The notes under the pieces: model-generated
Told to the model about the DNA's origin: nothing
Database searches by the model: none
Seen by the model: the letters and a program-made list of their open reading frames with translations, nothing else
Made by a program: the position numbers and the translations under genes
Assembly: GCA_040285825.1 (NCBI GenBank)
Contig: JAUPSS010000003.1
Coordinates: forward strand, 62,001 to 126,000
Reading direction: 5' to 3'
Length of the DNA: 64,000 nucleotides
From: Eukaryota sp. TZLM1-RC
Taxonomy: Eukaryota; Protista; Metamonada: BaSk clade
Shown here: positions 3,969-61,490 of the stretch, one piece after another
Position numbering within the stretch: the first letter of the stretch is position 1
Layout of the letters: each line of letters opens with the position of its first letter

Positions 3969-6068
3969 TTACTTGCTGGTATTACGTCCAGTATTATATT
4001 TTCTAAATTTATTTAGCAGAGGAGTCTTAATAGTTGACCTTGATAAAGAGCGTGGACTAAGAGAAACAGTGTAATCCTCCGTGAACAGATCATTAATTTT
4101 TAATGAATCCTGTTGAGAACAGGATTCATCAGTACTGGTTAATAAATGAGTTGGGACCGCAAATACTGTCTTAACCTTGGAATGCAATTCTTCAAGAAAA
4201 GAATAGGAACCCTCACTTAGTAGCACATAATGACGTGAAACGAGAAAAACAGATATCTTACAAGAGAATAGTAAAGAACAAACCAATGAAGGCAAAAGCA
4301 TATCTTGGTTTTTAGCTAATTCAAACTCTTGAGGATCTAATTTAGACCAAAAACCTGAAAACTTGCGTACAAAAGACTGCAATCCAAAGGGGGTTAAGCC
4401 ATTTGCTTGATTAATTATAAGTTCACAATTACCTAAAACCATTGAACTATTTTCCTTCAAAAAAGGAGAAAACGAAAACTTCTTGAAAATAATTTCAGAT
4501 TGAGTTTGAAAAAAATTTCTCGGTAGGAAAGAATAATTCAATGTTTCAGTAAAAGTGACGGGGTTAATTGATAGGGAATCATAACAAAAATTGTGGGATT
4601 TAATTTGGGTAATCTGGTTTTTAAAAGCATGGACAAATTGAATCAAATAGCACAAATTTGAAACCGTGTCATAAAATTTGAAAGAATCATTATTTCTACT
4701 TACAATTGGAGAGGAACAATAATTGTTTGGAGAATAAAAAAGTAAGATTTGACTCAATAAGGATGAAACATCTATATCAAATCCATTAAGATTTTGCTTA
4801 ACATAATCCACAATATTTTGCTTTTTAGACAAAGAATGTGCTAAATAACTAAGATAACCAAGGTCATTGATGGCACCTTCCATAACAAAAGGTCGAATCA
4901 AAGTAATCAATGATTGAGCAAACTCAGAAAAGGAAACAGAATGTTCACAAATTGATGAATTATTGATGTTAACGTTGGATTGAAAATAAAGATTCATCAT
5001 TTTTGTTAAACATTTAGTGAAATATTGCTTGAAAGGAATTAAAAATTCAAGGTGTATGAGAGTTTTGATGATTGAAGGACATCCTTCATTAGGATTGGGT
5101 AAAAGATCAAAAGAAACAAGTTGATTCGTTCTATTTGAATTAACCGATTGAAACCTTTGAATTGGAAATAGTACACAAATTAATGAACTTAAAATAGAAG
5201 AAATTTCCTTACCGAGAGCAATTAATATGTCCTTTTGGTTTGCATTAAGATTATTTGAAGGTAAAAATTCTTTCAATATTTGTGATAAATTACTGCATTC
5301 AGTGGAATGAACAACATTAATTAAAAGATAAATTCCATTTAAGAGACGTCGAAGCTTGCATAAAAAGTATTTAGGAACAGCCTTGACAAGCAACAGTAAA
5401 TCATTAAATAAACAAGTTTTTGAAGTAGCACTAATATGCAATGAACCAAGTTCAGATTCCAATTTGGTATTTTCAACACCATTAATTCCAAGTAACCGCA
5501 ATTGGGAACAAGACAAAGAAGCAAAGATAGAGAAGAACTCAACCTCTCGAAGTAAAGCGGTAATAGGAATAATAAGGTGAGGAAAATCAGCCTCCACCAT
5601 CGTGTAATGATTACTGGGTGTACATTTTACAGAAATCTTGCCAACAAAACCATATTTAGGGGACATACACATTGAATGCAAGACTCGTAAAAGTGGAGAG
5701 AGGATAGGTTGAGGTTCAAATTTCAGTTTTGAGTGAAAGAAAGAAAGAGAAGAGAAAAAAAGGTTAGACATTGATGGACTATAGCTTCCTGCAAAGACAA
5801 TGTGAATGTTTGACGGATTGTACTGAGACACGGCATGAGATATGAGAGAAAAAGGGTGTGGTGACAATAGTTTTGATTCAGCAATGTGCAGGAAACCTGG
5901 TGAATTGATGAAATTGGAATCAAGCAATGCATGGAAGCAAAGAGGTGAAATGAAGTCATTGAACAATGGAGAAGGTATTGCGATAAGGGCAGGACCACAA
6001 TACAAAAAAGGGTGAGATCTTCCATAGTCATGAATAAAAGAGCTCTCGGCACACAGTAGATCGTCCAT
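3969..6068 (-). CDS. Hypothetical protein, 699 aa
   Basis: Long uninterrupted ORF with host-like composition; no motif recognised. Confidence 0.7.
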   Translation of the reverse strand: MDDLLCAESSFIHDYGRSHPFLYCGPALIAIPSPLFNDFISPLCFHALLDSNFINSPGFLHIAESKLLSPHPFSLISHAVSQYNPSNIHIVFAGSYSPSMSNLFFSSLSFFHSKLKFEPQPILSPLLRVLHSMCMSPKYGFVGKISVKCTPSNHYTMVEADFPHLIIPITALLREVEFFSIFASLSCSQLRLLGINGVENTKLESELGSLHISATSKTCLFNDLLLLVKAVPKYFLCKLRRLLNGIYLLINVVHSTECSNLSQILKEFLPSNNLNANQKDILIALGKEISSILSSLICVLFPIQRFQSVNSNRTNQLVSFDLLPNPNEGCPSIIKTLIHLEFLIPFKQYFTKCLTKMMNLYFQSNVNINNSSICEHSVSFSEFAQSLITLIRPFVMEGAINDLGYLSYLAHSLSKKQNIVDYVKQNLNGFDIDVSSLLSQILLFYSPNNYCSSPIVSRNNDSFKFYDTVSNLCYLIQFVHAFKNQITQIKSHNFCYDSLSINPVTFTETLNYSFLPRNFFQTQSEIIFKKFSFSPFLKENSSMVLGNCELIINQANGLTPFGLQSFVRKFSGFWSKLDPQEFELAKNQDMLLPSLVCSLLFSCKISVFLVSRHYVLLSEGSYSFLEELHSKVKTVFAVPTHLLTSTDESCSQQDSLKINDLFTEDYTVSLSPRSLSRSTIKTPLLNKFRKYNTGRNTSK

Positions 6069-37360: not shown

Positions 37361-37511
37361 GATGGGCTTTTTAGTAGGTTAAAATATTAGTTAAGGTTTT
37401 TGGTTTAGTTTCAAAATGTGAATGTTCCACAAATAAATCTATGATCATCAGCAGGTTAGATAAAGGATCGCAGTCTCATATATTCTTGTGTTCTGAGAAT
37501 AAGTAATAGTA

Positions 37512-37760
37512 CTGTGAATTTCACATATCATACATTCCCCTGTGAAATTCACTCCTGTTTTCAACTTTCTCAATGTCTACTCACAAACTGTAAGAGACAT
37601 GTAGCGTCATTTGACAAAGACAATCATGATCTTCATCAATGGGCTACATCACTTGAATACACCTACTGCTTTCACAAAACAAAGCCTCGCGACTTGATGT
37701 ATCTTAGTGGATCTACCAAATGCTACTAAGGCATTTGTAAATCGATCTCAAAAGTTTTTG
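37512..37760 (-). ncRNA. Putative omegaRNA scaffold, copy B
   Basis: About 94% identical (hand count 15/249, no indels) to 50462-50710; hairpins GTGAATTTCACA/TGTGAAATTCAC and CAAATGC/GCATTTG. Confidence 0.7.
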
Positions 37761-39983
37761 AAAACAATTAAAAAAAATAAATAACTCAAAAAAATACAAG
37801 ATTTTCAACAGTTGTTGTTTCTGTATGCTCAGATTCGTTCATTCATTTTCTCAACAGAGCTTTTGGGCAAATGTATCGTAGCGGCCCCAATTCCGCTTTC
37901 TTCTTAATTTGAATATTTTTTGCAGCGGAAATATCTCTGTCATATACTGTTTGGCACTCAGGACAAATACGCATCTACCAGGAGTCTTTTGAATTTTTTC
38001 GGCCATGCAACAACTGGACAGTTTGCTTGTATTAAATTCACTGGTTGTCAAGTGCTTCAGGTCCTTTTGATAACACAACCATTATCTGAAAGCCCTAGCA
38101 GACCCATATCGATTGGTTTTTCGGCAATGAGAAGGGAAATTAGCAAAACCCACAACAAAATAGAGTTTTTCAGGATGTCCAGACAGCCTTTGAAATTTGT
38201 TGAGGCTCTCTCGGAACTGTCTCTCTTTATATTTGGGATGTCAAATTTAATTATGTTCCGCTTTTAGCGATTACTTTCCAAGTACACTTTCCTCCTGACC
38301 ACATTCCATTGGTTCAAATTTTTGGTGAAATTTTGAACAGAATATTGGTTGGGGGAATGTTTACTAAGTGAAGGTTTTGTCATGTATCTTCTGAAATTTG
38401 GACAAGGGATAACTCCACAGTGATTATCATTTAAAAAGTAGTTACATAATCTAAATTGTCCTAGATCAACGCCAATAAGGGGCCTTTCAGGTAAAATTTC
38501 GACTGGATCTCTGCGTCTTTAACAGCAAATGTTTTTAATACCCTTCAACTGTAATTCTCTGGTTTTGTTGGCATCAGGGTCACTTTTCATTTCTTCTTTC
38601 AATTTTCTTTTCCTTGTCGGTAATTCATCCAGCTCAGCTGTGTTTTTGAGTCATTATTTTTATTTTCAAAAATGAATAACAGTTCATTACCATTAGTTTT
38701 CAATAGGATCTTTTTAGATCTATTTTTCAAACCTTTTCTGTTGATATCAAATTTTTGATAAGCGTATTGTTTGAATACTCGTATCGGACATGTATTTTTG
38801 ACGAACTTTGTTTTGAAAAATAATCCTTCAATAAGGGAAAATTTTTTCGAAGAAAGGAAAATTTGTGAAGGTACCTCAAGAAATTCAGAACCTTTATAAA
38901 AAGCTAAAAGTATCTTTCTAAATTTCTTCCAGCAATGTATACGAGAATAAAAAGTGAGTAAGTATTGTGAAATTTTAAGATTAAAGAGAAAAAGCTCATT
39001 AATTTTCTTTGATGAAAAGGTGATTCTATTACTTGAACATTGTAAAAAAGCAGTGACAGGAAATCTTTGGAAAAGATTCAAGATAAAATTACATGCATTT
39101 GCTAAAAAGAATCTTATTCTTGAATTATTAAAATGGAATTTGATGTAGTGTTCAAGAACAGAATCAACAACTACTTATTCGGGTTGCTCACCTTTTGTTA
39201 TTACACTAGCTTCTAAAGGTGCTAAGGGTTCATCTGGAATAAGATAGAGAAAATAATTGGCAAAGACATTCGTTTTATCCAGAGCTCTACAATGAGCACA
39301 AATAAAATTTTTTGTCCAGGATTGACAGATTTTAGGTAAACTTGTCTTAACATTAGATGCCAATTGACGAGCCCGACAAGCAAGGTTTGGAGAAAGTTCT
39401 TTTCTATTGATAAAATTACATTTCTGTGACTACAGCCAATCGTTGAGGAAATTGATGAATGAATTTTTATAAGGAACTAAACAATTTTTCCATGTAGAAA
39501 CAAGTGACCTGTCTTGTGGACATTCAGGAAGAAATCCACTGTAAAAGATATGTAGTAATTGGCGTTGTTTTTTGGAGGTGGATGGGTTTGGAAAAGAATA
39601 AGTGGTGATGACGGTCATAAACAATTACCATACATATTGTTCCACTAAAGCTCTAGATGCCAACGGAAAATTCAAAAAATAGATTGAAGCAGTAAAGAAG
39701 CTTCATGACAAATCTCGGTGACCAAAGGAAGGTCAGTCCGAATTTGTTGCACCGCTGCAGGGGCCAGTAGCGGATTTAAAGGCACAAGACCGAATGAATA
39801 CACGTGACACAGAGCGGGTGTTTGACATGTAGTGAGAATAAAGATTTCATCTATCAAATTTTACACTTGTCACCCCTTTTTCGACTTCTGGTTGCCTGTT
39901 TTGAGAATTTTTTAACGCTCAACTTAGTTTTGGGAGGTTTTTACTATTCCCACACTTTCCCCTCATTTCATAAACTAGGTTCT
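37512..39983 (-). mobile_element. Fanzor1 element family 1, copy B (2.47 kb; ORF about 37851-39828, pseudogenised)
   Basis: Collinear with copy A lacking the LTR insertion; 'LIGVDLG', 'SEFNTSK', 'CPEC..YDRDISAAKNI'; homology to A stops at both ends next to a TA. Confidence 0.9.
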
Positions 39984-40893
39984 TAGTTCCCTCACTTACG
40001 TTCTTTTCCGAGCTTTAGGACTCCCCCTGTATTCTCAATACGTGGTTTTCTACTCATTTTTGATTCATTTTTACCTTATACCTGCAGTTGGTTCCCTTAA
40101 AACAATTGTTGGACTCGTCCTAAATCCCACCACTCTCTTCCTGTATGTCCATTCCTTTCCATCGTCAGCTCCTTCACAATTCAATTTTTCTCTTCTCTTA
40201 GACTCTGTCAAAATGGTTGTTGATGAAATTGAGTCATCGCAATGTCATGGAGTGCTTTGTAGCCACTTAACCATAGTTTAAGCAGTTTTATCAGTTTTAA
40301 TAAGCATAATTTTACATCACTGTTAGATCTTTGAATGATTCGTTTTTAATTTTGTTTATTCCTTTGGAGTTTTCAGTTTAACATCCCAATCAGTATTACC
40401 ATCTCCATTCTTTTTGTCATAAGGAGCACTTTTAGGTACAATACTGATCTACCAAGTAGACCACGAAACAAGCTCGTCTGACAATTGTCTGGAGATAAAA
40501 CAATTAGTGGTACTCAGTATCAAACAGTAATTTGGAAAGACTCATAATGATTTGTTCTTTGTTGATTTGATTTTTGAGAAAATTCTGGTCTGGGAACAAT
40601 TTTCACTGTTCATTATTATGATGTTTGGGCACTGTTACAACTTCTCTGGACTGGGTTTGAAGCTCAAGTTTTCATTATGATTATGATGAATTATGATCGG
40701 GAGTTCTTCGTTGAGTTTGTTTTTGTGTAGCCCATAGTTCTATTTGTACCTCATGTCAACAAATAAAACAGCTAATGTAAATAACATGTTGTACAGCTGA
40801 TCCACGTGTACATTTTTAGTACTGAAAAAATAATAAACAATTTATTCTATCCAAAAAATCTGACACGAACTCCTCGAACGAACATCTATAAAG

Positions 40894-47412: not shown

Positions 47413-47916
47413 TCAGAATTGTCTTCCGTCTAGATTCATCTGTTTTTTTGTGATAAGCATAGCATTAGGACTCAACTCAGTAACAACCAATTGAAAAGTT
47501 ACATAATGATTTGTGTGGTTAAATAAATCGCAGTTAACATCATAATGATCTAAGAAAGGAACTAAGAGGTCTACAAAATTATTTAAAATTGAATCATGTC
47601 TACACTTGGGTCTATTGTTTATTTCTGGAATTTGATAACTTGGACAAATGCATAAAATGTGGCATAATTTTGCTAGCCTAGATTGACATAACAAGCACAC
47701 AGGAGACAATAGTTTAGATCCATCAGGCATTTTCCGACAAATTTTCCATAGAGAAAGGTTATCAACAGTAGGTAGTACATTCAAGGATGAAGTAATTGCA
47801 AATTTAATAATTCTAAAAGGTAGATCAATCAACATGGACAGCCAATGATGATCAGCGTTCATATTTTCTGAGTTTAACATGGCATTGTTCATTAAAGATT
47901 GTAATTTGGACTCCAT
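47413..47916 (-). pseudogene. HERO/NeSL-like non-LTR C-terminal fragment
   Basis: Identical to the 8557-8983 protein up to 'HYVTFQ'. Confidence 0.7.
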
Positions 47917-48058
47917 AATTGTTTCATTATTTTGTTTAAATCAAAGTTGAAAATTTCAACTTATAATTTATTGAGCTTTCACACTTAACAAAAATAAACT
48001 CATAACTAATGGGACGAATTTCATTGAAGCAACATTTCCTTTACAAAATTTTTGATCT

Positions 48059-50290
48059 GAAAGTTTCAACTGCAAATATAATGATTTCAGAAGTTCTCGT
48101 TTGACTGCACTTGTCAAAAATTCAAAAATGGATGTTCGTCCTATTGCAGTCTCTGAGAGCTTACATAATATTTTTTTCTGCGTGTTGCTTAAGCAGGTTC
48201 AATGAAAAAGCTAAAAAGATTTTATTACCCTTTCAATATGGTATAAATACTACAGATGGAGTCTCTTCAGCGATTTTTGCTACTGATGTCTTATTTCGTC
48301 AAAATGAATCCAATGTTTGCATGTCATTGGATTTTAGTAATGCTTTCAATTCGCTAAGTCGTCGGAGTATCCATGGTGCTCTATTGCAATATATGCCAGA
48401 ATTAATACCATATTTTCAATCAACATATTGCACATATTCTAATTTACATTTTGGTAACAACATTTTGATTTCATCAAGTGGCGTAAAGCAAGGAGATCCG
48501 TTAGGACCACTTTTTGTTTTGTTTGGCCATTCATCCTATTCTACTGCAAATTCAAGAGATGTTTCCTTCACTAAAAATGATTGCATATATGGATGATGTT
48601 GTGCTTATTGGTGAATTAAATATTGTGAAAAAAGCAACTGTATGTTTTAAAGAATTATTTACCAAAATTGGTCTCCGACTTAATTTACTTAAATGTGTTT
48701 TGTTATCGAATTCTCCAGTTTCCACAATAATTGATGATATTGAAATTCAAGCCAAATTATATTCAATTGATGCTATTCGTCATTTGGGTTCGTTTTTAGG
48801 AAATAATGATGAAATTACCAAAAAATTGTTTGAAAAGTTGAACTCAATTTCTGACAAAATTGACCGAATGATGAATTTAGATATAAAAAAACACATCAAA
48901 TTTACCATTATAAGACTGTGTTTTAGTTCCAATTTTAATCATATATTTCGATCTACAAATCCTCTCGTCACTAGACCTTTGGCTCAAAAGTTTAATGAGT
49001 TACGTGCAAAAGTTCTGTCTCAATTACTGGGATGTAAAATGTTTCAAATTCCAGATCATGCTTACCTTAGTCCACAATATGGTGGTTTAGGGTGGACGAA
49101 GGCTTCTATTCTTACCTCGTGTGCTTTTGTTGGTGGATGCAGAAATGCAATCTTTGAGTTCTCCGAAAGATTTGCAGATTGGGAAGATTTATTGATGACA
49201 ACGCAAAGTTCCACTGTTTTTGCATTAAATGAAGAAATTTCAAGAATTGATGTAGAAAAATGGGGTCGATGTTTTCCCCAATCATTCAATGGCAATATTC
49301 CAGAAAAAAATGTTTTAAATTTGAAGTACACTCTTCGAACATTACAGAAAAGATTGACTGGAATGTATGAAAAAGATCTTTATAATAATATTTGCAGCTC
49401 GGCTGTTTTAAATCAAGATCTTCACTCATTGTTATTGGAAAAGGGTGTTTGTGAAAACAAGGTGTCAGATTCTTCACTTTTTGTAACCATTGTACCACGA
49501 AGATTTGGATTGTGTGCTACTAATGAAGCATTTGTAACAAAAATGAGATTATATTTGAACATCCCCATTAACCAATTATTATCAAAAGAAAAATGTATTT
49601 GTTCGAATTCACCTCAACTCACTTTGCGCCATGCTCTAAATTGCTCTAAATTGATAACTTATCGTTCTTCATTACATGATGCTGTTAGAGACACTGTTTT
49701 CAATATGACACAAACTGCAAGGATATCGTGTATCAAAGAGCCCCTGCTGAAAGAAACACTTTCTCTGAATAATTTTGGTTCTGATGATAGAGGTGATGTA
49801 TACTGTGATTGGATTGATAATTCTGAAGCTATTGTTGACTTTGTCTCATGTAATGTTGCAAACGATACTTTGGTTCACAGAAGAAAACTTAATCCTGTGG
49901 CTGCTCTGGATTTTAAAGCAAAAGAAAAACATAGAAAATATGATAAAGAAATTGAAGATGCAAATATCGATAGAAATACACAGCTGGTTTTTATTGCTTT
50001 TCCATTTTCGATAAATGGAAGATTATCAGTTGAAGCAGAAACTTTTTTGGATGACTTCCAAAAAATGGTGAAAGAAAAAACAATGAAAAGATTTGATATT
50101 TTTTTATGGCGTTCACGGATTCAATTTGCCATTATTAATAGATTACCGCGGTTTTTCAATCGAATTAGAGAAGCTTTAGCTAGACAGCAAGCAAATCAAG
50201 ATTTTGTAGAGGAAATCTTGGTTTAATGATAGTCGTCCCATTAGTTATGATTTAATTTAATCAAGTGTGCAAATTCAATAAATTAATGAT
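48059..50290 (+). mobile_element. 5'-truncated CRE-like non-LTR element; 570-aa open RT-end/RLE ORF 48514-50226, one frameshift in a T-run near 48512
   Basis: 'YMDD', 'GGLG', knuckle, 'HDAVRD', 'RGDVY..D..VD', 'KAKEKHRKY'; 3' UTR to about 50290. Confidence 0.92.
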
Positions 50291-50461
50291 TTCATTATAT
50301 AATTCATTGTAAATTTCGGGAAAATGTGTACCAACACGGTGAGAAAAAAACTACATAACATTCGTTCAACACAATCAATTAATGAGGCATTTACGACTAA
50401 CGAAGCGTCAACTGACAGATCTAATTTACATGGCCCCTAAATTTGTTGCAATTCTATTCTA

Positions 50462-50734
50462 CTGTGAATTTCACTTATCATGCATTCCCTTGTGAAATTC
50501 ACCCCTGTTTTCAACTTTCTCAATGTCTACTCACAGGCTGTAAGAGACATGTAGCATCATTTGACAAAGACAATCATGATCTTCATCAATGGGCTACCTC
50601 ACTTAAATAGACCTACTGCTTTCACAGAACAAAGCCTCGCGACTTGATGTATCTAAGTGGATCTACCAAATGCTACTAGGGCATTTGTAGATCGGTCTCA
50701 AAAGTTTTTGTTTCTGTATGCTCAGGTTCCCCGT
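50462..50734 (-). ncRNA. Putative omegaRNA scaffold, copy A
   Basis: Non-coding tail between the Fanzor stop and the element end; at least four hairpins; more conserved versus copy B than the ORF. Confidence 0.7.
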
Positions 50735-52413
50735 TCATCTTCTCAACAGAGCATCTGGGCAAATGTATCTTTCCGGCCACAATTCGGCTTTCTTCTTAAT
50801 TTGAATATTTTTTGCAGCGGAAATATCGCTGTCATATACTATTTGACACTCAGTACAAATACGCATCTGCCATGAGCCTGCTTGAATATTCTCGGCCATG
50901 CAACAACTTGACAGTTTGCTTGTATTAAATTCACTGGTTGACAAGTGCTTCACGTCCTTTTGATAACACAACCATTTTCTGAAAGCCCTTGCTGATCCAT
51001 ATCGATTGACTTTTCGGCAATGAGAAGGGAAATTAGCAGAACCCACAGCAAGATAGAGTTTATCAGGATGTCCAGCCAACCTTTGAAATTTGTTGAGACT
51101 CTCTCTGAACTGTCTCTCTTTTCGTCTGCGGTTATCAAATTTAATTATTTTCCATTTCTGGCGATTACTTTCCAAATACACTTTCCTCCTGACCAAATTC
51201 CAATGGTTCAAATATTGGTTGAAATTTTGAACGGAATATTGGTTGGGAGAGTGTTTACTGGGTGAAGGTTTTGTCATGTATCTTCTGCCAGTTGGACAAG
51301 GGATAACTCCACATTGATTATCATTTAAGAAGTAACCACATAATCTTGATTGGCCAAGATCAACGCCGATAAGGGGGCTTTCAGGTAAAATTTCGACTGG
51401 ATGTCTACGTCTTCGACGGGGCATTTTTTAGTACCCTTCAACTGTGTTTCTCTGGTTTTGTTGGCATTAGGGTCACTTTTCATTTCATTTTTTGATCTTC
51501 TTTTCTTTTTCGGTGGTTCATCCAGCTCATCTGTGTTTTCTGAGTCATTAGTTTTACCTTCAAAGGTCAAAAGCAGTTCATTACCATTAGTTTTCAATAA
51601 AATTTTGTTAAATCTATTTTTCAAACTTTTTCTGTTGATATTGAATTTTTGGTAAGGACATTGTTTGAATACTCGTTTCAGACATGTATTTTTGATAAAC
51701 TTTGTTTTGGAAGATGATCCTTCAATAATTGGAAATTTTTTCACAGAGTGGAAAATTTGTGAAGGTACCTCAATAAATTTAGAACCTTTATGAGAAGCTA
51801 AAGGTATTATTCTAAATTTCTTCCAGCAATGCATATGAGAAAAGAAAGTGAGTAAGTATTGTGAAATTTTAAGATTGAAGAGAAAAAGCTCACTAATTTC
51901 CTTTGATGAAAAAGTGATTTTATCATGTGAGGACAGTAGGGAGGCAGTGGTAGGAAATCTGTGAAAGAGATTCAAGATAAACTTACATGCATTCAATAAA
52001 AAAAATCTTTCTCTTGAATTATTCAAATTGAAATTGATGAGGTATTCAAGAACAGAATCAACTACTACTTCCTCGGGTTGGGCTAGTGGTTCATCTGGCA
52101 AAAGTGAAAGAATATTATTTGCAAAGACATTTGTTTTATCCAGGGCTCTACAATGAGCACGAATAAAGTTTTTTGTCCAGGATTGACAAATTTTAGGTAA
52201 ACTTGTCTTAACGTTGAAGGCCAATTGACGAGCCCGACAAGCAAGGTAAGGAGAAAGCCCTTTTCTATTGATAAAATTACAGTTCTGGGACTGCAGCCAA
52301 TCATTGAGGAAAAGATTGAATGAATTTCTGTAAGGCACTAAAGAATTTTCCCACACAGAAACAAGAGACCTGTCTTGTGGGCATTCAGGAAGAAATCCAT
52401 TGTAAAAGATATG
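50735..52413 (-). CDS. Fanzor1-like RNA-guided nuclease, central and RuvC part (1-nt frameshift near 51425)
   Basis: RuvC-I 'LIGVDLG', rearranged RuvC-II 'YLAVGSANF...SEFNTSK', Zn finger 'CC...CTEC', RuvC-III 'DSDISAAKNI'; copy B is 1 nt longer and in frame across the shift. Confidence 0.9.
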
Positions 52414-52567
52414 TGATGGTCTTGGCTGTTGGTTATTGTCTGACATACAATGTAGAGTAACAGAAGTGTAATTTATTACGAAGAGGAATTGTATTCTCTC
52501 TTCTTAAGCTAACAGGCGGAATACTAATAACTAAACTATTAACTATAAATACTATTCAAGACTAACA
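52414..52567 (-). repeat. 3' LTR (154 bp)
   Basis: Identical to 59656-59809. Confidence 0.97.
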
Positions 52568-54097
52568 CTGCCTTTTCCTCTCTTTCGAGCGACGAGCCCT
52601 GGAAGCTCTAGTCACAGGAGGTGAACTAATGGAAATATGACGCTTCTTGGGAGGAGCGGATTTAGTACGGCGACGTGCTTTTGAAGTCTTGATAAAGTCT
52701 TTATACGCGGCAGTATTTTGGACTGTAGACACATGTTCGGTGGTGATCTCTTTTCCAGGCCATTGCACTTGGCAAAAGTCACCATCCTGACTGAGCACTT
52801 TTTCAATGATGTGTTCTTCGACATCACCTGCAGCGACCCAGGAGTGGAACTCATCGTTGGTGGGCAAGCTGGAGTGCCAGGGTGCTAAATGTTTGACGCT
52901 AGCTTGGACAATCGTACCTGTGCAGAGATTCTTAATATTCACAGACGAATTGGATACGATTTCAGTAATTAGGAAGGGTCCTAAATAGTCTCCATGAAGC
53001 TTAGCGGAAGAGCCAGATGCTCTCAATACCAATTGACCAACTTCAAAAGGGTTTGGAGTTGACGATCTAGTTAGCTTGGAAGCTTTGGAAGCTTGATGGT
53101 GTGCTGCCTTTTCCTGTTTCTCTTTCAATCTTCGAAATTTAGATTGAATTTCTTGAATAAAAGATGACTCAGACGTAGAGCTTTCAATGATTTCAAGAAT
53201 TTTGCCAGGGTCTGATCTGGGAGACACATCTGAGCCAAAGATCACTTGGTATGGGGTGTGGTTGGTAATTGAGCTCTTGGAAGAGTTGATCAATAATTGC
53301 ACATAAGGCAAGTATTCAGACCACACATCGTAGGCATTGAAGTCTACGAGCAATTTCCGTAGGTTTTGCAGGATGTCTCTGTGTCGGCGCTCTACCAGGC
53401 CGTTGGACGGAGAAAACCTAGGTATTGACTTTGACACCTCTATGCCCAAAAATTTGCTTAATTCGTCAAAGACAGCCTTGGAAAATTCGGGTCCATTATC
53501 GCTGTGGATTTGAAATGGAATACCAAAGATGGCACAGACTTTCCAAATTAATGCATCTGCAGTAAGATTGGCATTTATCTCTTTTAAAGGCACGATGATC
53601 GTGAACCTAGAGAAGCTGTCAATAAATACGAGGATGTATTTGTAGCCTTCTTGATCTTCTGGAAGAGGACCAATGACGTCGGCGTTGACGCGAGCAAAAG
53701 GTCTGTCAGCCCACAATGAACCGGTTGGGGGAACATGCAGTTTGGGAATTGGCTTTGTTTTCTGACAGGAGGGGCATTCTTGGACGTGCTTATTCATGTC
53801 GGTGAGCATGTTTGGCCACCAATAATCGCTGTTCCTGAGCTTGTTCAGGCTTTCAGCTTTGCTTGGATGACCTCCTTGCAGAAGTCCATGCAACAAGTTA
53901 AGGGTGTCCTTAGTGATTGATTTGGGAATCACTATCTTGTTGTCGTGAGTCATATATAAATCAAGATGATTGTTATGAACACAGTTGTTGAAAGAGGGGT
54001 CTTTGGAAGCTATGGCAAGCTTCTGTTCGGACCTAATCCTACAGAGCCATGGCTCGAAAATAGGCAGATCGTTGGAACATCGTTCTCTGATGACCAT
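52562..54097 (-). CDS. Integrase with C-terminal chromodomain-like module
   Basis: HHCC, 'ADVIGP', 'SDNGPEF', 'NGLVERRH', 'GPF', 'HIIEKVL..QVQWPG'. Confidence 0.92.
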   Translation of the reverse strand: MVIRERCSNDLPIFEPWLCRIRSEQKLAIASKDPSFNNCVHNNHLDLYMTHDNKIVIPKSITKDTLNLLHGLLQGGHPSKAESLNKLRNSDYWWPNMLTDMNKHVQECPSCQKTKPIPKLHVPPTGSLWADRPFARVNADVIGPLPEDQEGYKYILVFIDSFSRFTIIVPLKEINANLTADALIWKVCAIFGIPFQIHSDNGPEFSKAVFDELSKFLGIEVSKSIPRFSPSNGLVERRHRDILQNLRKLLVDFNAYDVWSEYLPYVQLLINSSKSSITNHTPYQVIFGSDVSPRSDPGKILEIIESSTSESSFIQEIQSKFRRLKEKQEKAAHHQASKASKLTRSSTPNPFEVGQLVLRASGSSAKLHGDYLGPFLITEIVSNSSVNIKNLCTGTIVQASVKHLAPWHSSLPTNDEFHSWVAAGDVEEHIIEKVLSQDGDFCQVQWPGKEITTEHVSTVQNTAAYKDFIKTSKARRRTKSAPPKKRHISISSPPVTRASRARRSKERKRQC

Positions 54098-54127
54098 GAT
54101 ACGTTCGAAGTTGTTTAAGTCTTCGAT

Positions 54128-56284
54128 TTAGTATCTTTCATTTTCTGTTCCATCAATTTTATCAATGTAAAATATTGGATGAAAATTTGGAGGCATTTGA
54201 TGGGACAAATGATTGATCTCTTGATGGTCTATAGGCGGAACTATTCGAGACAACATATCAGCCCAGAAGTTATCTTCCCCTTTGGTATGTACCAAATCAA
54301 AGCAGAATTCAGAGAATATGGGTAACCATCTTGTTACAACTCTGTTCTTCTCAGGAGCCGTGAACATGTAGGTAAGGTTTTGATGGTCTGTGAATATAAC
54401 CAGTTTCCTTCCTTTCAAGTAGTTTTCAAAACCACTTTGAGTTAACATGAGTAGGATAGCATAGAGTTCCTTTTGGTTTGTCGGCCAGTTCTTTTGCGAG
54501 TTGGTTAACAACCGGCTGAAGAAGCTGATAGGCCTACATTTCCTGTTGATCAGGGGGGTAACGGGGTCGTCGACTTGTTCGATTTGTTCCCATATGACGC
54601 CGCCTACAGCAATGTCGGATGCATCGCAACTAATTAAAATTTGGTTTTCCAGCGGAGGTAAGCTGAGCGGCATGTGCTTCACTATCAGTTGTTTGATCTT
54701 TTGAAGGAGTCCGTCGTGCATGTCGGTCCATTGAAGGCGTTGCGCGCGGGGTTTGGGTTTAACTTTGGAGTTATTTCCATCCTTCTTAGTCAATCTGATG
54801 ATAGGAGCGATGAGCTCAGATACCTGAGGAGGCCATTTTCTAATGAAGTTGACTGATCCTACGAGGCTGCGGACGTCTTTGATTGTCTTTGGTCTAGGTA
54901 GATTCAGCAAAGATTCAACGCGAGTGGGATCGATAGTCCGTTGTTTGTTTTGGAAAACACTGCCCAGTATCTTGATTGGGTGTCTGGAAGACACGAAATG
55001 GCACTTTGGAAGCCCCAAGGAAACTCTTTTGCATCTGGCTTGATCAAGGACGCGACGGAGGCGTTCAATGAATTCGTCAAAGGTTGAACCTATGATTATG
55101 ATGTCATCTATGTAAATGAAGACACCGTCTTCCGAGAAGATGTCAGCCATGACGTTTTGGAATACGGCTGGGACATTCTTTAGGCCAAAAGCTGCACGTT
55201 TGAACATGATGCTTTTGCCAGGAATGCTCAGGGCTGTTTTCTGCCAATCCTTTTCGGCAATTTGGAGTTGCCAAAAGGCTTTGGGGAGGTCAAGGGTGCC
55301 TATGTAGTTCGCTTGGGAGAGAAATACCAGCACGTCGGAGATCCTTGGAAGGTTGGGCTCAACAGGAATGGTGTTGGCGTTGACTCCGTCCTTGCCACTA
55401 TAATCACCGGTAAAGCGGGGCTTACGGTGATCTGGGTAGACCACTAGACAGACAGGGGAGCTGAACTCATGGTTCGATGGGACAGCAAATCCTGAGTCTA
55501 TGAGTTCGTCGAAAATTTGGTTAGCGACCTCTAGCCTGGCTGGATTCAGGGTCCTGGTGGGTCTTCTAACTCTGACGTCTTCATTGTAGAAGTTGATTTC
55601 CATGGGAGAGCAATCAATACCTTCAGCATGAGGCTTGAGGGTGAATACGTCTTCGAACTCTTTCAAAGTTTGAAGTAGGGACTTCTTGAAATGGTCGTTG
55701 TCGAGGTTGATGGTACAACCAGATGAGTTGATGTGTTCCAACCAACGTGTGGAAACGTTGACGACTTCTGAAGCTTGCGATATTCGATGGTCGAATTCGG
55801 CTTCAGGTAATAGTAATGTACGACAGGCGTCGTCCATTCTAATATAAATGCCCTTGTTGTTCATCAGCCCAAGGTGACTCAACAAGTCAGCACCAATGAG
55901 AATGGTCTCGTGTCCAGGAACGATGCTGAACTTGTGTTTCACGTGTACAATCTGGGTAACACTACTTAGTCTAATGCTAAGGGTTCCAGAAGCAGTACCA
56001 AGGGACTGTGAGGTAGTTCCATCAGCAATCTTGTATGATATGGTTTCGTTGGACCGTGCCATGTTACAATTACTGATGACGTCTTCCGTGACTACTGAGC
56101 ATGTTGCACCAGAGTCAATTATGCCTTTAACTTCGACATTGTTGATCAAGAAGTTTAATTGTAGGCAGTTGGTTGTGGACTTTATGGTTTGTACCATGAA
56201 TATTGTATCCGAATCGTATTCAGCTTGTTCTGAGAAGAAATTAGCTTGAATGTTGTGTGTCTTGGTATGTTCCAAGTTGGCCAA
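54128..56284 (-). CDS. Pol: aspartic protease, RT, RNase H
   Basis: 'IDSGA', 'AAFGLKN', 'YIDD', 'CDASD', 'KELYAI', 'TDH', 'WADMLSR'. Confidence 0.95.
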   Translation of the reverse strand: MANLEHTKTHNIQANFFSEQAEYDSDTIFMVQTIKSTTNCLQLNFLINNVEVKGIIDSGATCSVVTEDVISNCNMARSNETISYKIADGTTSQSLGTASGTLSIRLSSVTQIVHVKHKFSIVPGHETILIGADLLSHLGLMNNKGIYIRMDDACRTLLLPEAEFDHRISQASEVVNVSTRWLEHINSSGCTINLDNDHFKKSLLQTLKEFEDVFTLKPHAEGIDCSPMEINFYNEDVRVRRPTRTLNPARLEVANQIFDELIDSGFAVPSNHEFSSPVCLVVYPDHRKPRFTGDYSGKDGVNANTIPVEPNLPRISDVLVFLSQANYIGTLDLPKAFWQLQIAEKDWQKTALSIPGKSIMFKRAAFGLKNVPAVFQNVMADIFSEDGVFIYIDDIIIIGSTFDEFIERLRRVLDQARCKRVSLGLPKCHFVSSRHPIKILGSVFQNKQRTIDPTRVESLLNLPRPKTIKDVRSLVGSVNFIRKWPPQVSELIAPIIRLTKKDGNNSKVKPKPRAQRLQWTDMHDGLLQKIKQLIVKHMPLSLPPLENQILISCDASDIAVGGVIWEQIEQVDDPVTPLINRKCRPISFFSRLLTNSQKNWPTNQKELYAILLMLTQSGFENYLKGRKLVIFTDHQNLTYMFTAPEKNRVVTRWLPIFSEFCFDLVHTKGEDNFWADMLSRIVPPIDHQEINHLSHQMPPNFHPIFYIDKIDGTENERY

Positions 56285-56292
56285 AGGATCGA

Positions 56293-59200
56293 TTAGGGAA
56301 TCTTTCCATGTTGTGTTTTCTGTGTGGGAATTTGTTGTAGTTGTAGGGGGTATGGTTTCAAAACTGCGTAAATAGTGACGGGAACGTTTATTATATGATG
56401 AAGAGCCTCAGCCTCTGCCGCGAGTGCCTCTTCGACAACGGAAACCAGAACCTCTAGAACCTCTGCCTCGAGCTTGATGTTGAGCTTGTTGCTCTCTCCA
56501 CTTTTTGCTTCTTTGGCAGTCCTCACTAGGGCACCTTTCAGTCGGATGACCCATTTGTTTACAGAAATTGCATTGGACGTTGGGATCAGACTGAGTGGAA
56601 GACGGTTGAGTAGAGCTTCCTTCTCGTCGTTGTTGTTTGGGCGCCTGTCAGAGCTGGAACCTCTTGGTTTGGGGATAGCAGGGGGAGAAGGTACCGTCTG
56701 TCTGCAACAGTTCTCAGTCTGAAACGAGATTCTATTTTGATACAAGAAGTCCACGTGATTGATCTGCTCCTTAAAAGATCTAGCATTACAGAAATTTTCG
56801 TATTCTATTTGGAGAACACTGAAAAATTCTCCTAGGGTGTGGCCATCTGAGTAGTAATGGGAGGGATTGGACCAGATCCTGAGGAGTCTGTCCCTGATGA
56901 TGGTAATACCGATGCTTTCAATGACGTGAGAAGCAAATTCCCATTCGGGGAGTCGGTCGACGGGGTTTCCGTGGATGGTGATGTTTCTCATTTGATGAGT
57001 CAGACCGCGAACGTCTTGGATAGCGGTGGAACGCGTTAAGACTCTGCCTATGTTAAGCATGAAGTCTATCCATCTGTTACCATAATCTCTCTCAGACCAA
57101 TCCATGTGTACAGCATGAAGTGCGTCCAGGGCTTGATCCAGTCTACTGAATTGGGTTCTCCTTAGGATCTGTTCCCAAATGTTGCGTTCGTCTTTGCTGG
57201 TTGGGACCATGGCGGAGGAAATTGAAAGGCCAGTGCCTTGATACCTTAAAGCGTTGAGAGCTTCAGGTGTAACGCATTCAGCTAAGCCTTTAGGACTAAT
57301 GCGCATGGCAGATCTGAAAAGATCCCATTCATGAATTGGTTCACTGTCGAACCGTTGGTCAGATGCCAGTTCTGCTGATCTAGCTCGTTCAAGTTCTTCA
57401 CGAAGTCTAGCAACTTCGCTGGCTAAAGCAACTTGGGCAGGATCCTCGATGTTGCCTCGAGCCTCGTCTACAATTCTATCTGTACGACTCCAGAGGATAA
57501 ACTTGTTAACAAACTTGAGGAGTTTATCAACATCCATTAAATCAGTCGCGTTGAGAGTTGGACGTTTGGGGCGGTCTCTGCGTCTGTTGTTTCTATCTCT
57601 TGATCCCACCATGGAAGATAGGAGAAGGTTACTATCGTAAGTACCTGAGAAAATAGAACGTGAAGAACTAACCGTAGAAGGTGTTGGTTGAGCCGTGTGT
57701 TGTGAACTTGTTGAACCAGTGGAAGGAGGTGTGGGTGGAACCACTGATTGTTCCATCGGCTGTGCAGGTGCTGGAGTTTGTTCCATTGGTGCTAGCACAG
57801 TTGGAATTGAGTCTGGAGTTGGGGACTCATCACTGACTTCTACTACAACATCCTCTTCAGTTTGTTCCATGGGAGGATTATGCGAGGGTTCTGTAGAAGT
57901 TTCCATAGGTTGATCTGTGGAAGGTGGAACTTCGCGTTGGTGAGGTTCAGGAGAAGGTTCTATCTCTTCAATCTGGGCTGGAACCTGGTAAGAAGAGATC
58001 GCTGGTTGAACCAAGCGTGTTTTCTCTATACGACCTTCTACCATTACCCACTTTAACATCCTGGATTCTATGCATCCAGGGAAAACGGTGACGAGCTGGA
58101 GGGCTCTTTGAAGATTGCCTGATCTTCTGTGGTCAGGACCACAATATGAAGCTATATGGTCAGGACGTCTGTCGTAAAGAAAGAGTCTTTCACCGTATGT
58201 AGTTTCGGTAAACCACCACCCTGTTCTATAATCTCTGTCGATAAGGATATCGAGAGATGCGTTGTACCCAGGGCTGAACCTAGGGTAGGGGCAAGGGTTG
58301 TGAACATTTAAGAAGAGGTTGTCTTCATCTCCAGCGAAGCGTCTGAATACTCCTTCTCGAGTAGTTCTCATGAACCTAACTCCGGGTCTTGGTTCGTGAG
58401 TTGGTTTTGGGTCATTCCTGGAGGTTTCTGGGGTGATCCTTTCATCGGTAAGAAATGGACCTATTCTGGGAGAGATCCATAATCCTAAGTCGTTCTCGAC
58501 TTTGGGACCGTAGAAAGGAGGCCGTTTGTTGCTCATCTCCGTGGGAGGGATGGCTTCTGGATCCTCTGGAATGACTCGTGTGTCCCTATATCTAGCGTAA
58601 GGGTTGTGCTGACGGGAAGCACCATGATGAACACTTGAGCTAGCGTGGGAGCTAGTTTGAGAACGGGTAAGTTGAGCAGGTGTAGAGGATGTTCCTCTTC
58701 TAGCTTCAATCTCTCTGTCCAATCTTTTTCTGTGTTCCCAGTTTCGTTCTTCTTGGAGGAAACGCTCTATATATTCTTTAGAGACCTCACCAGGAATTTT
58801 GTCAATTTCAGAAGAAGGTGCCGTGGGAGGGACCTGATGTTGAGGTAGAGGGGAGAATTCCTTGGGAGGTTCCTCGTACTCAACCAAATCTGAAAAGATT
58901 TGTTCGTACCTTTTCCTTTGCTCTTCGGAAAGATACGAAGGAAGGTTCGAAAGGCTAGGAATGGAATCACTAGCCTGGTGAGGGGAAACAGACAGATTAT
59001 TAACTCCACTAACTGTTGAAGTTAGAGGAGATCCTGAAGTTGGAACAGCAGGATTTTGGATAGTTCTCCTAACAGTTGGAACTGGAGGGAGAAACTGTTG
59101 AGAGTGAGAGGGTGGAACCTCAGAACTAGATGAAAGGGATGAAGATGGTACTTCAATGGCCTTTGTAGAGGAGGAAGAGGGTTGATCTTCTAATCCTTCC

Positions 59201-59688
59201 TTTGACGCGAGAGAAGGTTGAACAGTCTCTCTGTTCTGAGTAGAAGGTGAAGATGGTACTTCAGAACTTCTTTCAGGGAGGGAAGAAGATGGGACTTCAG
59301 ACGCCCTTAAATGTGAAGGAGGGAGAGGAGCAACGGAATCCTCAGCATCTTCATCGTCGTAGGAGACTAATGAAGGGCTTCTTCCTTCCGAAGGAATAGA
59401 ATCCTTAGGAGGGTTGTCTCCTTCCACAGGAACGGAATCCAGAGGAGGGGAACTTCCTTCCATTGGAACGGAATCCTCAGGAAGGGAACTATTTTCCTTT
59501 GGGGTGGAACCCTCAGGACGAGTTGCTTCAGGAAGCGCAGAAGCTTCAACCGAAGAAGGAGGCATGGAAGCAGGGTCTGTGGTTAATGGTGAGGAAGAGG
59601 GACCAGTCTCTTCCTCAAGGATCCTACGTTGAGCCGGGGACGACCCAATACGTATTGATGGTCTTGGCTGTTGGTTATTGTCTGACAT
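56293..59688 (-). CDS. Large Ser/Pro-rich Gag-like protein (CCHC knuckle lies in the alternate frame near 56550)
   Basis: 1131-aa ORF starting inside the 5' LTR; the shifted frame gives 'CNFCKQMGHPTERC' and is in frame with pol. Confidence 0.8.
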   Translation of the reverse strand: MSDNNQQPRPSIRIGSSPAQRRILEEETGPSSSPLTTDPASMPPSSVEASALPEATRPEGSTPKENSSLPEDSVPMEGSSPPLDSVPVEGDNPPKDSIPSEGRSPSLVSYDDEDAEDSVAPLPPSHLRASEVPSSSLPERSSEVPSSPSTQNRETVQPSLASKEGLEDQPSSSSTKAIEVPSSSLSSSSEVPPSHSQQFLPPVPTVRRTIQNPAVPTSGSPLTSTVSGVNNLSVSPHQASDSIPSLSNLPSYLSEEQRKRYEQIFSDLVEYEEPPKEFSPLPQHQVPPTAPSSEIDKIPGEVSKEYIERFLQEERNWEHRKRLDREIEARRGTSSTPAQLTRSQTSSHASSSVHHGASRQHNPYARYRDTRVIPEDPEAIPPTEMSNKRPPFYGPKVENDLGLWISPRIGPFLTDERITPETSRNDPKPTHEPRPGVRFMRTTREGVFRRFAGDEDNLFLNVHNPCPYPRFSPGYNASLDILIDRDYRTGWWFTETTYGERLFLYDRRPDHIASYCGPDHRRSGNLQRALQLVTVFPGCIESRMLKWVMVEGRIEKTRLVQPAISSYQVPAQIEEIEPSPEPHQREVPPSTDQPMETSTEPSHNPPMEQTEEDVVVEVSDESPTPDSIPTVLAPMEQTPAPAQPMEQSVVPPTPPSTGSTSSQHTAQPTPSTVSSSRSIFSGTYDSNLLLSSMVGSRDRNNRRRDRPKRPTLNATDLMDVDKLLKFVNKFILWSRTDRIVDEARGNIEDPAQVALASEVARLREELERARSAELASDQRFDSEPIHEWDLFRSAMRISPKGLAECVTPEALNALRYQGTGLSISSAMVPTSKDERNIWEQILRRTQFSRLDQALDALHAVHMDWSERDYGNRWIDFMLNIGRVLTRSTAIQDVRGLTHQMRNITIHGNPVDRLPEWEFASHVIESIGITIIRDRLLRIWSNPSHYYSDGHTLGEFFSVLQIEYENFCNARSFKEQINHVDFLYQNRISFQTENCCRQTVPSPPAIPKPRGSSSDRRPNNNDEKEALLNRLPLSLIPTSNAISVNKWVIRLKGALVRTAKEAKSGESNKLNIKLEAEVLEVLVSVVEEALAAEAEALHHIINVPVTIYAVLKPYPLQLQQIPTQKTQHGKIP

Positions 59689-59809
59689 ACAATGTAGAGT
59701 AACAGAAGTGTAATTTATTACGAAGAGGAATTGTATTCTCTCTTCTTAAGCTAACAGGCGGAATACTAATAACTAAACTATTAACTATAAATACTATTCA
59801 AGACTAACA
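59656..59809 (-). repeat. 5' LTR (154 bp)
   Basis: Identical to 52414-52567. Confidence 0.97.
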
Positions 59810-60089
59810 TATGGAGTAATTGGCGTTGGCCTTTAGATGTGGAAGGCTTAGGAAAAGAACCAGTGGTGATGACGGTCATAAACAGATACCATACATCCTG
59901 TTCCACTAAAGCTCTAGATGCCAACGGAAAATTTAGAAGAAAAGATTGAAGTAATAAAGAAGCTTCATGACAAATCTCGGTGACCACAGGAAGGTCAGTC
60001 CGAATTTGTTGCACCGCTGCAGGGGTCAGCAGCGAGTTAAGTGCACAAGACCGAGTGAATACACGTGACACAGAGTGGGTGTCTGTCAT
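59810..60089 (-). CDS. N-terminal 93 aa of Fanzor copy A
   Basis: Joins in frame (..QLLH|IFYNGF..) to 52409 once the LTR element and one TSD are removed; matches 39550-39828. Confidence 0.88.
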
Positions 60090-60296
60090 GTAGTGAGAAT
60101 AAAGAGCTCATCTATCAAATTTTACACTTGTCACCCCATTTTCGACTTCTGGTTGCCTGTTCTGGGCGGTTTTTAACCCTCAACTTGGTTTTGGGAGGTT
60201 TTCACTATTCCCACACTTTCCCCTCACTTCATAAACTAGGTTCATAAACTAGGTGACCTTTGTAAAAGTTTCTGGAATTTCAACTCTATGTAACTC

Positions 60297-60719
60297 ATGA
60301 AAGACGCTCTCAGCATCATCAACAGATCAGTCCACGATACTTCTTTGTCTAAAGAACGTTTCTTTGTTGGTTTTGAGGATAGACTTGGCGGTGTATTCTT
60401 CCTCCCTCTTCACGATTTTCTTGCCTTATCTGTACCATCTCACAGAATTCGCTACATATCTAAAGGAAACTCATTTTTCTGGTCTCGCACAAAACGAATC
60501 AACCTTATTGGCTCTGTTGCACCTTCTGTTTCTTTATTCTCATCTCCAACACCTGGTGTTCTCTCTCGATATTTTCCTTCTCATGCTACTGGTAGAAAGA
60601 ATTTCCAGTTACCCTTCTTCTCTAACATTGTTTCTTGTAGTGTAGGTGTTCATCATACATTGGCACTCACTGCTTGTGGTAATTGCTATGGATTTGGTCT
60701 GAACAAATCTACCAATTAG
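60297..60719 (+). CDS. MJ1316/DUF504-like RNA cyclic-end recognition domain plus one RCC1-like repeat (probably truncated)
   Basis: 'IINR..HD', 'VGFEDRLGG', 'VPSHRIRYI', 'WSRTKRINL'; then 'SVGVHHTLALTACGNCYGFGLN'. Confidence 0.6.
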   Translation: MKDALSIINRSVHDTSLSKERFFVGFEDRLGGVFFLPLHDFLALSVPSHRIRYISKGNSFFWSRTKRINLIGSVAPSVSLFSSPTPGVLSRYFPSHATGRKNFQLPFFSNIVSCSVGVHHTLALTACGNCYGFGLNKSTN

Positions 60720-61192
60720 GCAACAACTACCCCCAAAGCAGCACTTTCAAACCGTTTTCCTAAGATTTTTTAGAAATTCAATCAATTTATCTATCCTAAA
60801 TGAACCCTGGAGAAAACCAAAAGTCGAAATGCTATACGACACGTGTGGATAAGGTTTGTCAAGTGGCATAAAGGTAGTTAGTGTTCATCATCTACTGAGA
60901 TTTCATGTTATTATTGATTAGCTACTTGCTTCAATTGTGATGTATCCGGGACAATTCCACAGAAATGATACTATCAATTTCTGTATGTATGTTATCATGA
61001 AGCTTCAGTTGTTTTGATGAACACACAACCATCCTTTTATGAACAGCAATTATAAATCCTCTATTAATGAGAAAAACATTAAAACAGCCAAAAAAAGATT
61101 CACATATTTACACTGTTGTGACAGCATGTCAATGCTGAAACATTAAAATCAAACAATTAAGCCATATTTATTTCTATGCAATACAAATCCAA

Positions 61193-61490
61193 CTATCCTT
61201 GTTGTTGAGCTTTCATTGACAAGCTTCTTCCTAAAGTTAACAGAATGATCATAAGGTAACAAACCAGCAGCTATAATTTCATCACACAACAATAATTGAG
61301 AAGAAATAACAGCAGACGAACGAATCATATTTCTTAAAACACAATAGTTGTCCCAAATTCCAAGTTCCTTTGGATCACAGGCTTCTCCAAAAAAGACATC
61401 TAAACCAACAATGCCACCCTCTTCGGCTTCTTCTTGCAAGTTGATAATAGTCTCTTCAGCATCAAGACCAGAGTTTTGAGCAAGTGTTTA
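61193..61490 (-). pseudogene. CCT6: 3' fragment of chaperonin CCT-zeta with a 34-nt intron (61231-61264)
   Basis: 'TLAQNSGLDAEETI..LQEE', 'VGLD', 'GIWDNYCV', 'QLLLCDEIIAAG|RSL'; no upstream coding part. Confidence 0.8.

Follow-up and report, generated by a model that had tools for sequence, protein, structure and literature searches.

Three separated open reading frames (ORFs) in the genome of the protist Skoliomonas litria are parts of a single broken gene for a Fanzor-type nuclease. They lie in a 64,000-nt window of strain TZLM1-RC (GCA_040285825.1, contig JAUPSS010000003.1, positions 62,001 to 126,000; filed as 'Eukaryota sp. TZLM1-RC'), to which all coordinates below refer. We consider it very probable that 60246-50460 on the minus strand is a dead copy (copy A) of a ~2.4-kb non-autonomous mobile element, which carries a single gene for a 651-residue Fanzor1-type nuclease and a 275-nt tail that is most likely an omega-RNA scaffold. 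S. litria is a free-living anaerobic metamonad from soda lakes (PMC11316075, PMC11603281). Fanzors are eukaryotic RNA-guided nucleases of interest as compact genome editors, and our literature search found no paper connecting them with metamonads. The enzyme class is already known; the Skoliomonas family adds a member to it.

ORF listing and Pfam scans place the three open pieces of the gene around a Ty3/gypsy element on the minus strand. Pieces 1-3 were searched separately, and the intact proteins P0063 from S. litria and P0046 from the sister strain GEM-RC1 served as full-length stand-ins. The features of copy A, and a second copy in the window, are:

60090-60246, minus strand: 5' leader common to copies A and B, with a left end that is not sharply defined

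59811-60089, minus strand: piece 1, the N-terminal 93 codons of the Fanzor gene, with the start Met at 60089

52414-59809, minus strand: Ty3/gypsy long terminal repeat (LTR) retrotransposon in codon 94 of the Fanzor gene, recognized by its LTRs, target duplication and Pfam domains

51424-52409, minus strand: piece 2, the remainder of the split Ile codon and 328 codons of the helical WED/REC part, ending ...GTKK at the A run

51424-51429, minus strand: A6 run; 7 nt, one base more, would put pieces 2 and 3 in the same frame

50735-51424, minus strand: piece 3, 229 codons, the RuvC and TNB zinc-ribbon half (PF07282, E 9.8e-6)

51361-51359, minus strand: RuvC-I Asp (GVDLG), in piece 3

51043-51041, minus strand: Gly at the canonical RuvC-II site (AVG), in piece 3

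50932-50930, minus strand: relocated Glu (SEFNTSK), in piece 3

50830-50828, minus strand: private Arg-to-Ser change (R621S), in piece 3

50827-50825, minus strand: RuvC-III Asp (DISAAKNI), in piece 3

50460-50734, minus strand: non-coding 3' tail that forms the element's right end and is a candidate omega-RNA scaffold (fold z -4.08)

37510-39985, minus strand: copy B of the same element, 85-90% identical and more decayed; it contains several stops and frameshifts, has 7 nt in the A run and is uninterrupted at the LTR site

Removal of the retrotransposon and one CATA joins 60089-59810 in frame to 52409, exactly at the coordinates proposed in a preliminary description of this DNA. The joined sequence reads ...QRQLLH-IFYNGFLPE..., and the same junction is uninterrupted in copy B and in the paralogues P0038 and P0063. 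That description also restored one nucleotide near the A6 run at ~51425 to connect the RuvC piece, and copy B and the copies at loci L002, L004 and L010 indeed have 7 nt there. The sum of 93 codons, one split codon, 328 and 229 codons is 651, with no further stop; this equals the length of P0063 and agrees with the ~650 residues expected. The motifs GVDLG, AVGSANF, SEFNTSK, CC/CxxC (SSCC/CTEC) and DISAAKNI (in the context DSDISAAKNI) are all present in copy A. Pieces 1-3 cover P0046 end to end without gap or overlap, matching its residues 6-90, 92-418 and 420-647 at 72%, 44% and 71% identity, respectively. Piece 2, in which a basic cluster (PPKKKRR) lies at 51516-51496 (minus strand), has no Pfam match and no usable match in the ESM Atlas. 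The GenBank model at piece 1 is a 102-aa protein that continues into the LTR, and a promoter/terminator scan found nothing above chance.

The preliminary description called for a reconstruction of the protein, but none is needed. P0063 (KAL0223451.1, annotated 'hypothetical protein') is an intact 651-aa protein encoded by a single 1956-nt ORF in the same genome; it is the uninterrupted copy that had been sought, and not every copy is disrupted. Copy A and P0063 differ at 16 of 650 residues (97.5% identity; 2/93 in piece 1 and 8/328 in piece 2), and their DNA is 98.3-98.8% identical. Five missense changes are private to copy A: S158F, Q243H, N380T, R527Q, and R621S. The last removes the Arg beside the RuvC-III Asp, which is kept by every relative and by SpuFz1, the Fanzor1 of Spizellomyces punctatus. 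Copy A would be disabled in three ways: by the recent Ty3/gypsy insertion in codon 94, by the 1-base shortfall in the A run, and by missense changes that include this Arg. The idea that the element was nearly intact until recently is borne out by the young LTR insertion but not by the five private missense changes. Copy A is an ordinary dead member of a high-copy family, which probably still functions.

The inserted element has identical TG...CA LTRs, a short target duplication and the domain order protease, reverse transcriptase, RNase H, integrase (PR-RT-RH-INT) typical of Ty3/gypsy. Its LTRs (59809-59656 and 52567-52414) are 154 nt each, start with TG, end with CA and are 100% identical, and thus the insertion is young. 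The 4-bp duplication CATA (minus strand) is found at 59813-59810 and 52413-52410, a polypurine tract lies upstream of the 3' LTR, and the ORFs match protease, RVT_1, RNase H, Integrase_H2C2, and rve in Pfam. The 3' LTR also supplies an ATG (MSDNNQQPRPS) that runs in frame into piece 2 of the Fanzor gene, forming a 373-codon chimeric ORF (52446-51325, minus strand); the same start, in the 5' LTR, opens the gag ORF of the retrotransposon.

The assignment of the gene to the Fanzors, as originally proposed, follows from the coverage of P0046 by the three pieces and from a profile of the wider family (A2), which combines the S. litria and GEM-RC1 proteins, three families from the strain Skoliomonas sp. 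TZLM3-RCL (hereafter RCL; GCA_040285805.1) and one metagenomic protein. Profile A2 matches SpuFz1 (PDB 8GKH) at E 3.2e-12 over 340 profile positions. TnpB, Cas12m, and TranC are matched only over the final ~60 residues, and the same search yielded no Fanzor2 chain at E 1 or better. In the A2 alignment, the SEFNTSK Glu corresponds to residue 935 of the 8GKH chain and the DISAAKNI Asp to residue 1000; subtraction of the maltose-binding protein (MBP) offset of 394 identifies them with SpuFz1 E541 and D606, both of which are metal ligands (PMC10432273). GVDLG lines up by eye with VIDPN of SpuFz1 (D383).

Fanzors lack the Glu at the canonical RuvC-II site; an alternative Glu is located shortly upstream of the zinc finger (PMC10711439, PMC10530073). 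Copy A likewise has Gly at the canonical site and a relocated Glu. The Fanzor pattern places this Glu exactly six residues ahead of a CxxC...CxxC zinc finger; in copy A the Glu and six residues are followed by S-S-C-C and then CTEC, four Cys in all. The preliminary description took Gly at RuvC-II with a downstream Glu as a mark of Fanzor1, a claim that does not stand: the combination is common to Fanzor1, Fanzor2 and some TnpBs (PMC10530073, PMC10711439). PF07282 (Cas12f1-like TNB) is borderline for piece 3 (26.1 bits, cut-off 26.3) and lies above the cut-off in the intact relatives P0046, P0009, and P0016 (28.5-34.4 bits).

We also built AlphaFold models. The model of piece 3, built with 13 sequences, was too poor for searching (mean predicted local distance difference test score, pLDDT, 44.8). 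In the model of the orthologue P0046 (mean pLDDT 48.5) only the RuvC core, with pLDDT of about 70-89, is usable. Residues 428-648 of this model match Cas12f with Z 10.3, mimivirus Fanzor2 with Z 10.2, TnpB with Z 9.8 and GtFz, a Fanzor1, with Z 8.1, and the best Foldseek matches are all Cas12f, Fanzor or TnpB. The RuvC/TnpB fold match that had been sought is thus found, with Z of about 10 to Cas12f, Fanzor2, and TnpB. Upstream lies a helical N-terminal half of ~420 residues, and a long helical insertion separates RuvC strands (model helices 483-535, confidence below 50). Fanzor1 proteins have an enlarged REC lobe, with a pair of kinked helices in REC2 (PMC10711439). The modeled fold supports membership in the TnpB/Cas12 superfamily, whose RuvC (RNase H-like) fold is interrupted by a helical insertion and the zinc ribbon; it is the broad family profile by itself that, at the level of sequence, supports the Fanzor1 call.

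The 275 nt that follow the stop codon are ~78% identical between species, vs 44% for the protein middle. The tail ends in a terminal hairpin (GTGAATTTCAC ... GTGAAATTCAC) followed by AGTA. Its terminus (...GTGAAATTCACAGTA) is at the same base in A, B, L001, and L006 and in the GEM-RC1 orthologue; L002 is one base short. A pairing model on six sequences leaves 98.4% of cells paired and contains five compensatory pairs changed on both sides; shuffles give 1.0 +/- 0.9 such pairs, and slid controls give 0-2. No Rfam family matched between 50300 and 52500. These properties suggest an omega-RNA scaffold for which the flank would act as guide. We infer RNA binding, guide use and DNA cleavage by this Fanzor family: the protein of an intact member would bind the tail RNA, the flank immediately beyond the right end would serve as its guide, and a RuvC site composed of the Asp of GVDLG, the relocated Glu of SEFNTSK and the Asp of RDISAAKNI would cut matching DNA.

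P0063 belongs to the 90% cluster of P0054, which holds 82 gene models, and the family thus comprises at least 82. GEM-RC1 encodes two orthologues, P0046 (648 aa, a single uninterrupted ORF) and P0050 (646 aa), both annotated 'hypothetical proteins'. An exhaustive HMMER search recovered near-identical fragments in S. litria and full-length relatives in sister strains; when the family alignment was used in a word-indexed search, all proteins recovered were from RCL. Pairwise ratios of nonsynonymous to synonymous substitution rates (dN/dS) among seven copies are 0.28-0.61, and therefore much of the divergence of the copies arose under selection on the protein.

Among the copies the 3' end is constant and the 5' ends differ. 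L002 and L005 are truncated copies, a different leader is present in B and L003, and a third group has an extension:

60247-61195, no strand assigned: 5' extension of ~950 nt, present in A, L001 (1843-2844) and L010 (1908-2851), not in B, L003 or L006

The extension contains a divergent 140-aa ORF (60297-60719, plus strand), a fragment of an MJ1316 + RCC1-repeat gene, and may represent host-gene sequence carried along with the element or the locus originally targeted. Flush direct repeats, located after ...CACAG and before the 5' end, were found in L001 (TACTGTGTATT, 11 nt; 1828-1838 and 5221-5231) and in L006 (TACTCCA, 7 nt; near 2546-2552 and 4962-4968); none were seen in A, B or L002. A cut-and-paste transposase does not leave repeats of unequal length along with a constant 3' end and variable 5' ends. 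RNA-mediated or one-ended copying would fit, because the 3' end is invariant, the 5' ends vary, the repeats are 11 and 7 nt long, host-gene sequence is carried along, and terminal inverted repeats (TIRs) and a transposase are missing. A speculative proposal, which we regard as improbable, is that these Fanzors form a live Fanzor1 clade specific to this lineage, with altered active-site surroundings (DLG, xxCC), and spread by such a right-end-anchored, non-canonical route.

At the P0063 locus (L010) the right end of the element is clipped by a long interspersed nuclear element (LINE)-like element. This LINE copy (L010:5233-7299) directly abuts the right end of the intact Fanzor and is 99.4% identical over 2070 nt to the LINE copy next to copy A. 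The latter, at 47490-50287 (plus strand), with an RVT_1 ORF at 48514-50226 and at least four copies in the window, stands tail-to-tail with copy A, 172 nt from the right end of the Fanzor element. Simple mimicry of the LINE tail is unsupported: the LINE-like 3' tail and the Fanzor right end show no likeness.

Several results weigh against our interpretation of copy A as a Fanzor1-bearing mobile element with an omega-RNA. When searched for TIRs, the left and right ends of the element matched each other no better than shuffles did, and a transposase was not found. HMMER places the RuvC-I Asp 11 residues off, and its register was corrected by eye. The narrow subfamily profile fails to match SpuFz1, as do P0046, P0016, and P0011 singly. 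The RuvC-I motif is DLG in S. litria and GEM-RC1 vs the DPG/DPN usual in Fanzors, where D-P-G is found 'near exclusively' (PMC10711439), a typical but not an absolute trait; the Asp itself is conserved, and DPG or DPN is present in relatives with 41% identity. Zinc knuckle 1 is xxCC, not CxxC; this form is common to the whole skoliomonad clade, and the metagenomic relative P0016 has CxxC. The poor models yield low TM-scores and do not separate Fanzor1 from Fanzor2/Cas12f by fold. Finally, all five compensatory pairs in the tail come from the single GEM-RC1 sequence.

One alternative is a Fanzor2-like protein or an unaffiliated Fanzor/TnpB offshoot in place of a Fanzor1. Such a protein would share the relocated Glu, which occurs in Fanzor1, Fanzor2 and some TnpBs, and would account for asymmetric element ends without TIRs and for structure matches to Fanzor2 and Cas12f that are as good as that to GtFz. 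However, the sole long profile match is to SpuFz1, with no Fanzor2 chain at E 1, the 651-aa protein has a ~420-residue N-terminal half far exceeding that of TnpB/Fanzor2, and matches to the NCBIfam TnpB models cover only ~60 residues and score far under the cut-offs. We thus judge a placement outside Fanzor1 to be unlikely. A host gene, whether domesticated or ordinary, or a contaminating bacterial TnpB would explain the lack of transposase, TIRs and regular target duplications, but is extremely improbable given that 82 gene models in one 90% cluster are spread over many multi-megabase contigs, all copies have a common 3' end with unrelated flanks, the Fanzor copies occur on a eukaryotic contig, nested with gypsy and LINE elements, and orthologues exist in two sister strains.

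A further question concerns the A6 run at 51429-51424, the boundary between the middle piece (328 codons) and the RuvC piece (229 codons). L001, L005, and L006 share the A6 state, unlike the 7-nt copies listed above; P0001 and P0063 read GTKKMPR straight through the site. In L001 the A6 is accompanied by an extra C 46 nt downstream (equivalent to window position 51378), which restores the frame after 16 out-of-frame codons, and the GenBank model P0038 reads through this +1 C site. The run is a site either of frequent mutation or of weakness in the assembly. If A6 were a homopolymer assembly error or a slippage-tolerated site, there would be no true lesion here, and copy A would be disabled by the LTR insertion and missense changes alone. 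The length of the run does not track the copy tree (A, with A6, is nearest to L010, with A7, and L002, with A7, nests among A6 copies), the assembly is built from Nanopore R9.4 reads with Illumina correction (PMC11316075), and a -1 slip on the A run would yield exactly the GTKKMPR of intact copies. Yet Illumina coverage is 206x, A7 was assembled in other copies, the frame-restoring C in L001 looks as if A6 were real there, and the GEM-RC1 orthologue lacks a slippery run at this site. We therefore consider a harmless A6 possible, though on balance doubtful, and keep the shortfall among the lesions of copy A.

The dead copy A leads to a complete candidate system in the same genome, the intact gene for the 651-residue P0063 and a conserved candidate omega-RNA. 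The many S. litria copies allow the element ends to be read, and two sister strains provide diverged orthologues. The variant motifs (DLG, xxCC) and the odd pattern of copy ends merit specialist attention.

Within Skoliomonas, P0063 and P0046/P0050 share family and architecture with copy A but are intact, whereas copy A is split by the LTR element, frameshifted and changed by R621S. The RCL proteins P0009 and P0023 are homologous in their Fanzor part, with 41% identity over the RuvC half (E 1.7e-40); they retain DPG. P0023 (L007:2501-6472) is encoded by one uninterrupted 1323-codon ORF in which an XPG_N/XPG_I (FEN1/EXO1-like) 5' nuclease is fused upstream of an RCL-family Fanzor; its XPG part is preceded by DVEPNPG, a 2A-like sequence, followed by Met instead of Pro. 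The element of copy A has no XPG domain.

Among characterized systems, ISDra2 TnpB and the IS200/IS605-type elements resemble the Skoliomonas element in combining a RuvC + TNB nuclease with a 3'-encoded guide RNA that extends into the flank, asymmetric ends and a subterminal right-end hairpin, the RNA being a prediction in Skoliomonas. TnpB differs in its size of about 400 aa, its canonical RuvC-II Glu and its TnpA partner; the Skoliomonas element encodes 651 aa, has a relocated Glu and no transposase, and resides in a eukaryotic host. The best solved relative of the family profile is SpuFz1 (PMC10432273), although similarity between SpuFz1 and the family is undetectable at the level of single sequences. 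The two proteins are alike in length (~640 vs 651 aa), in the RuvC-II Gly, in the Glu just before the zinc ribbon (the E541 equivalent) and in the R-D motif that follows at RuvC-III, and both belong to single-gene elements with a structured RNA at the 3' end. SpuFz1 has DPN at RuvC-I and CxxC at zinc knuckle 1, vs DLG and xxCC in S. litria, and its elements carry 30-nt inverted repeats, of which none were found in the Skoliomonas element.

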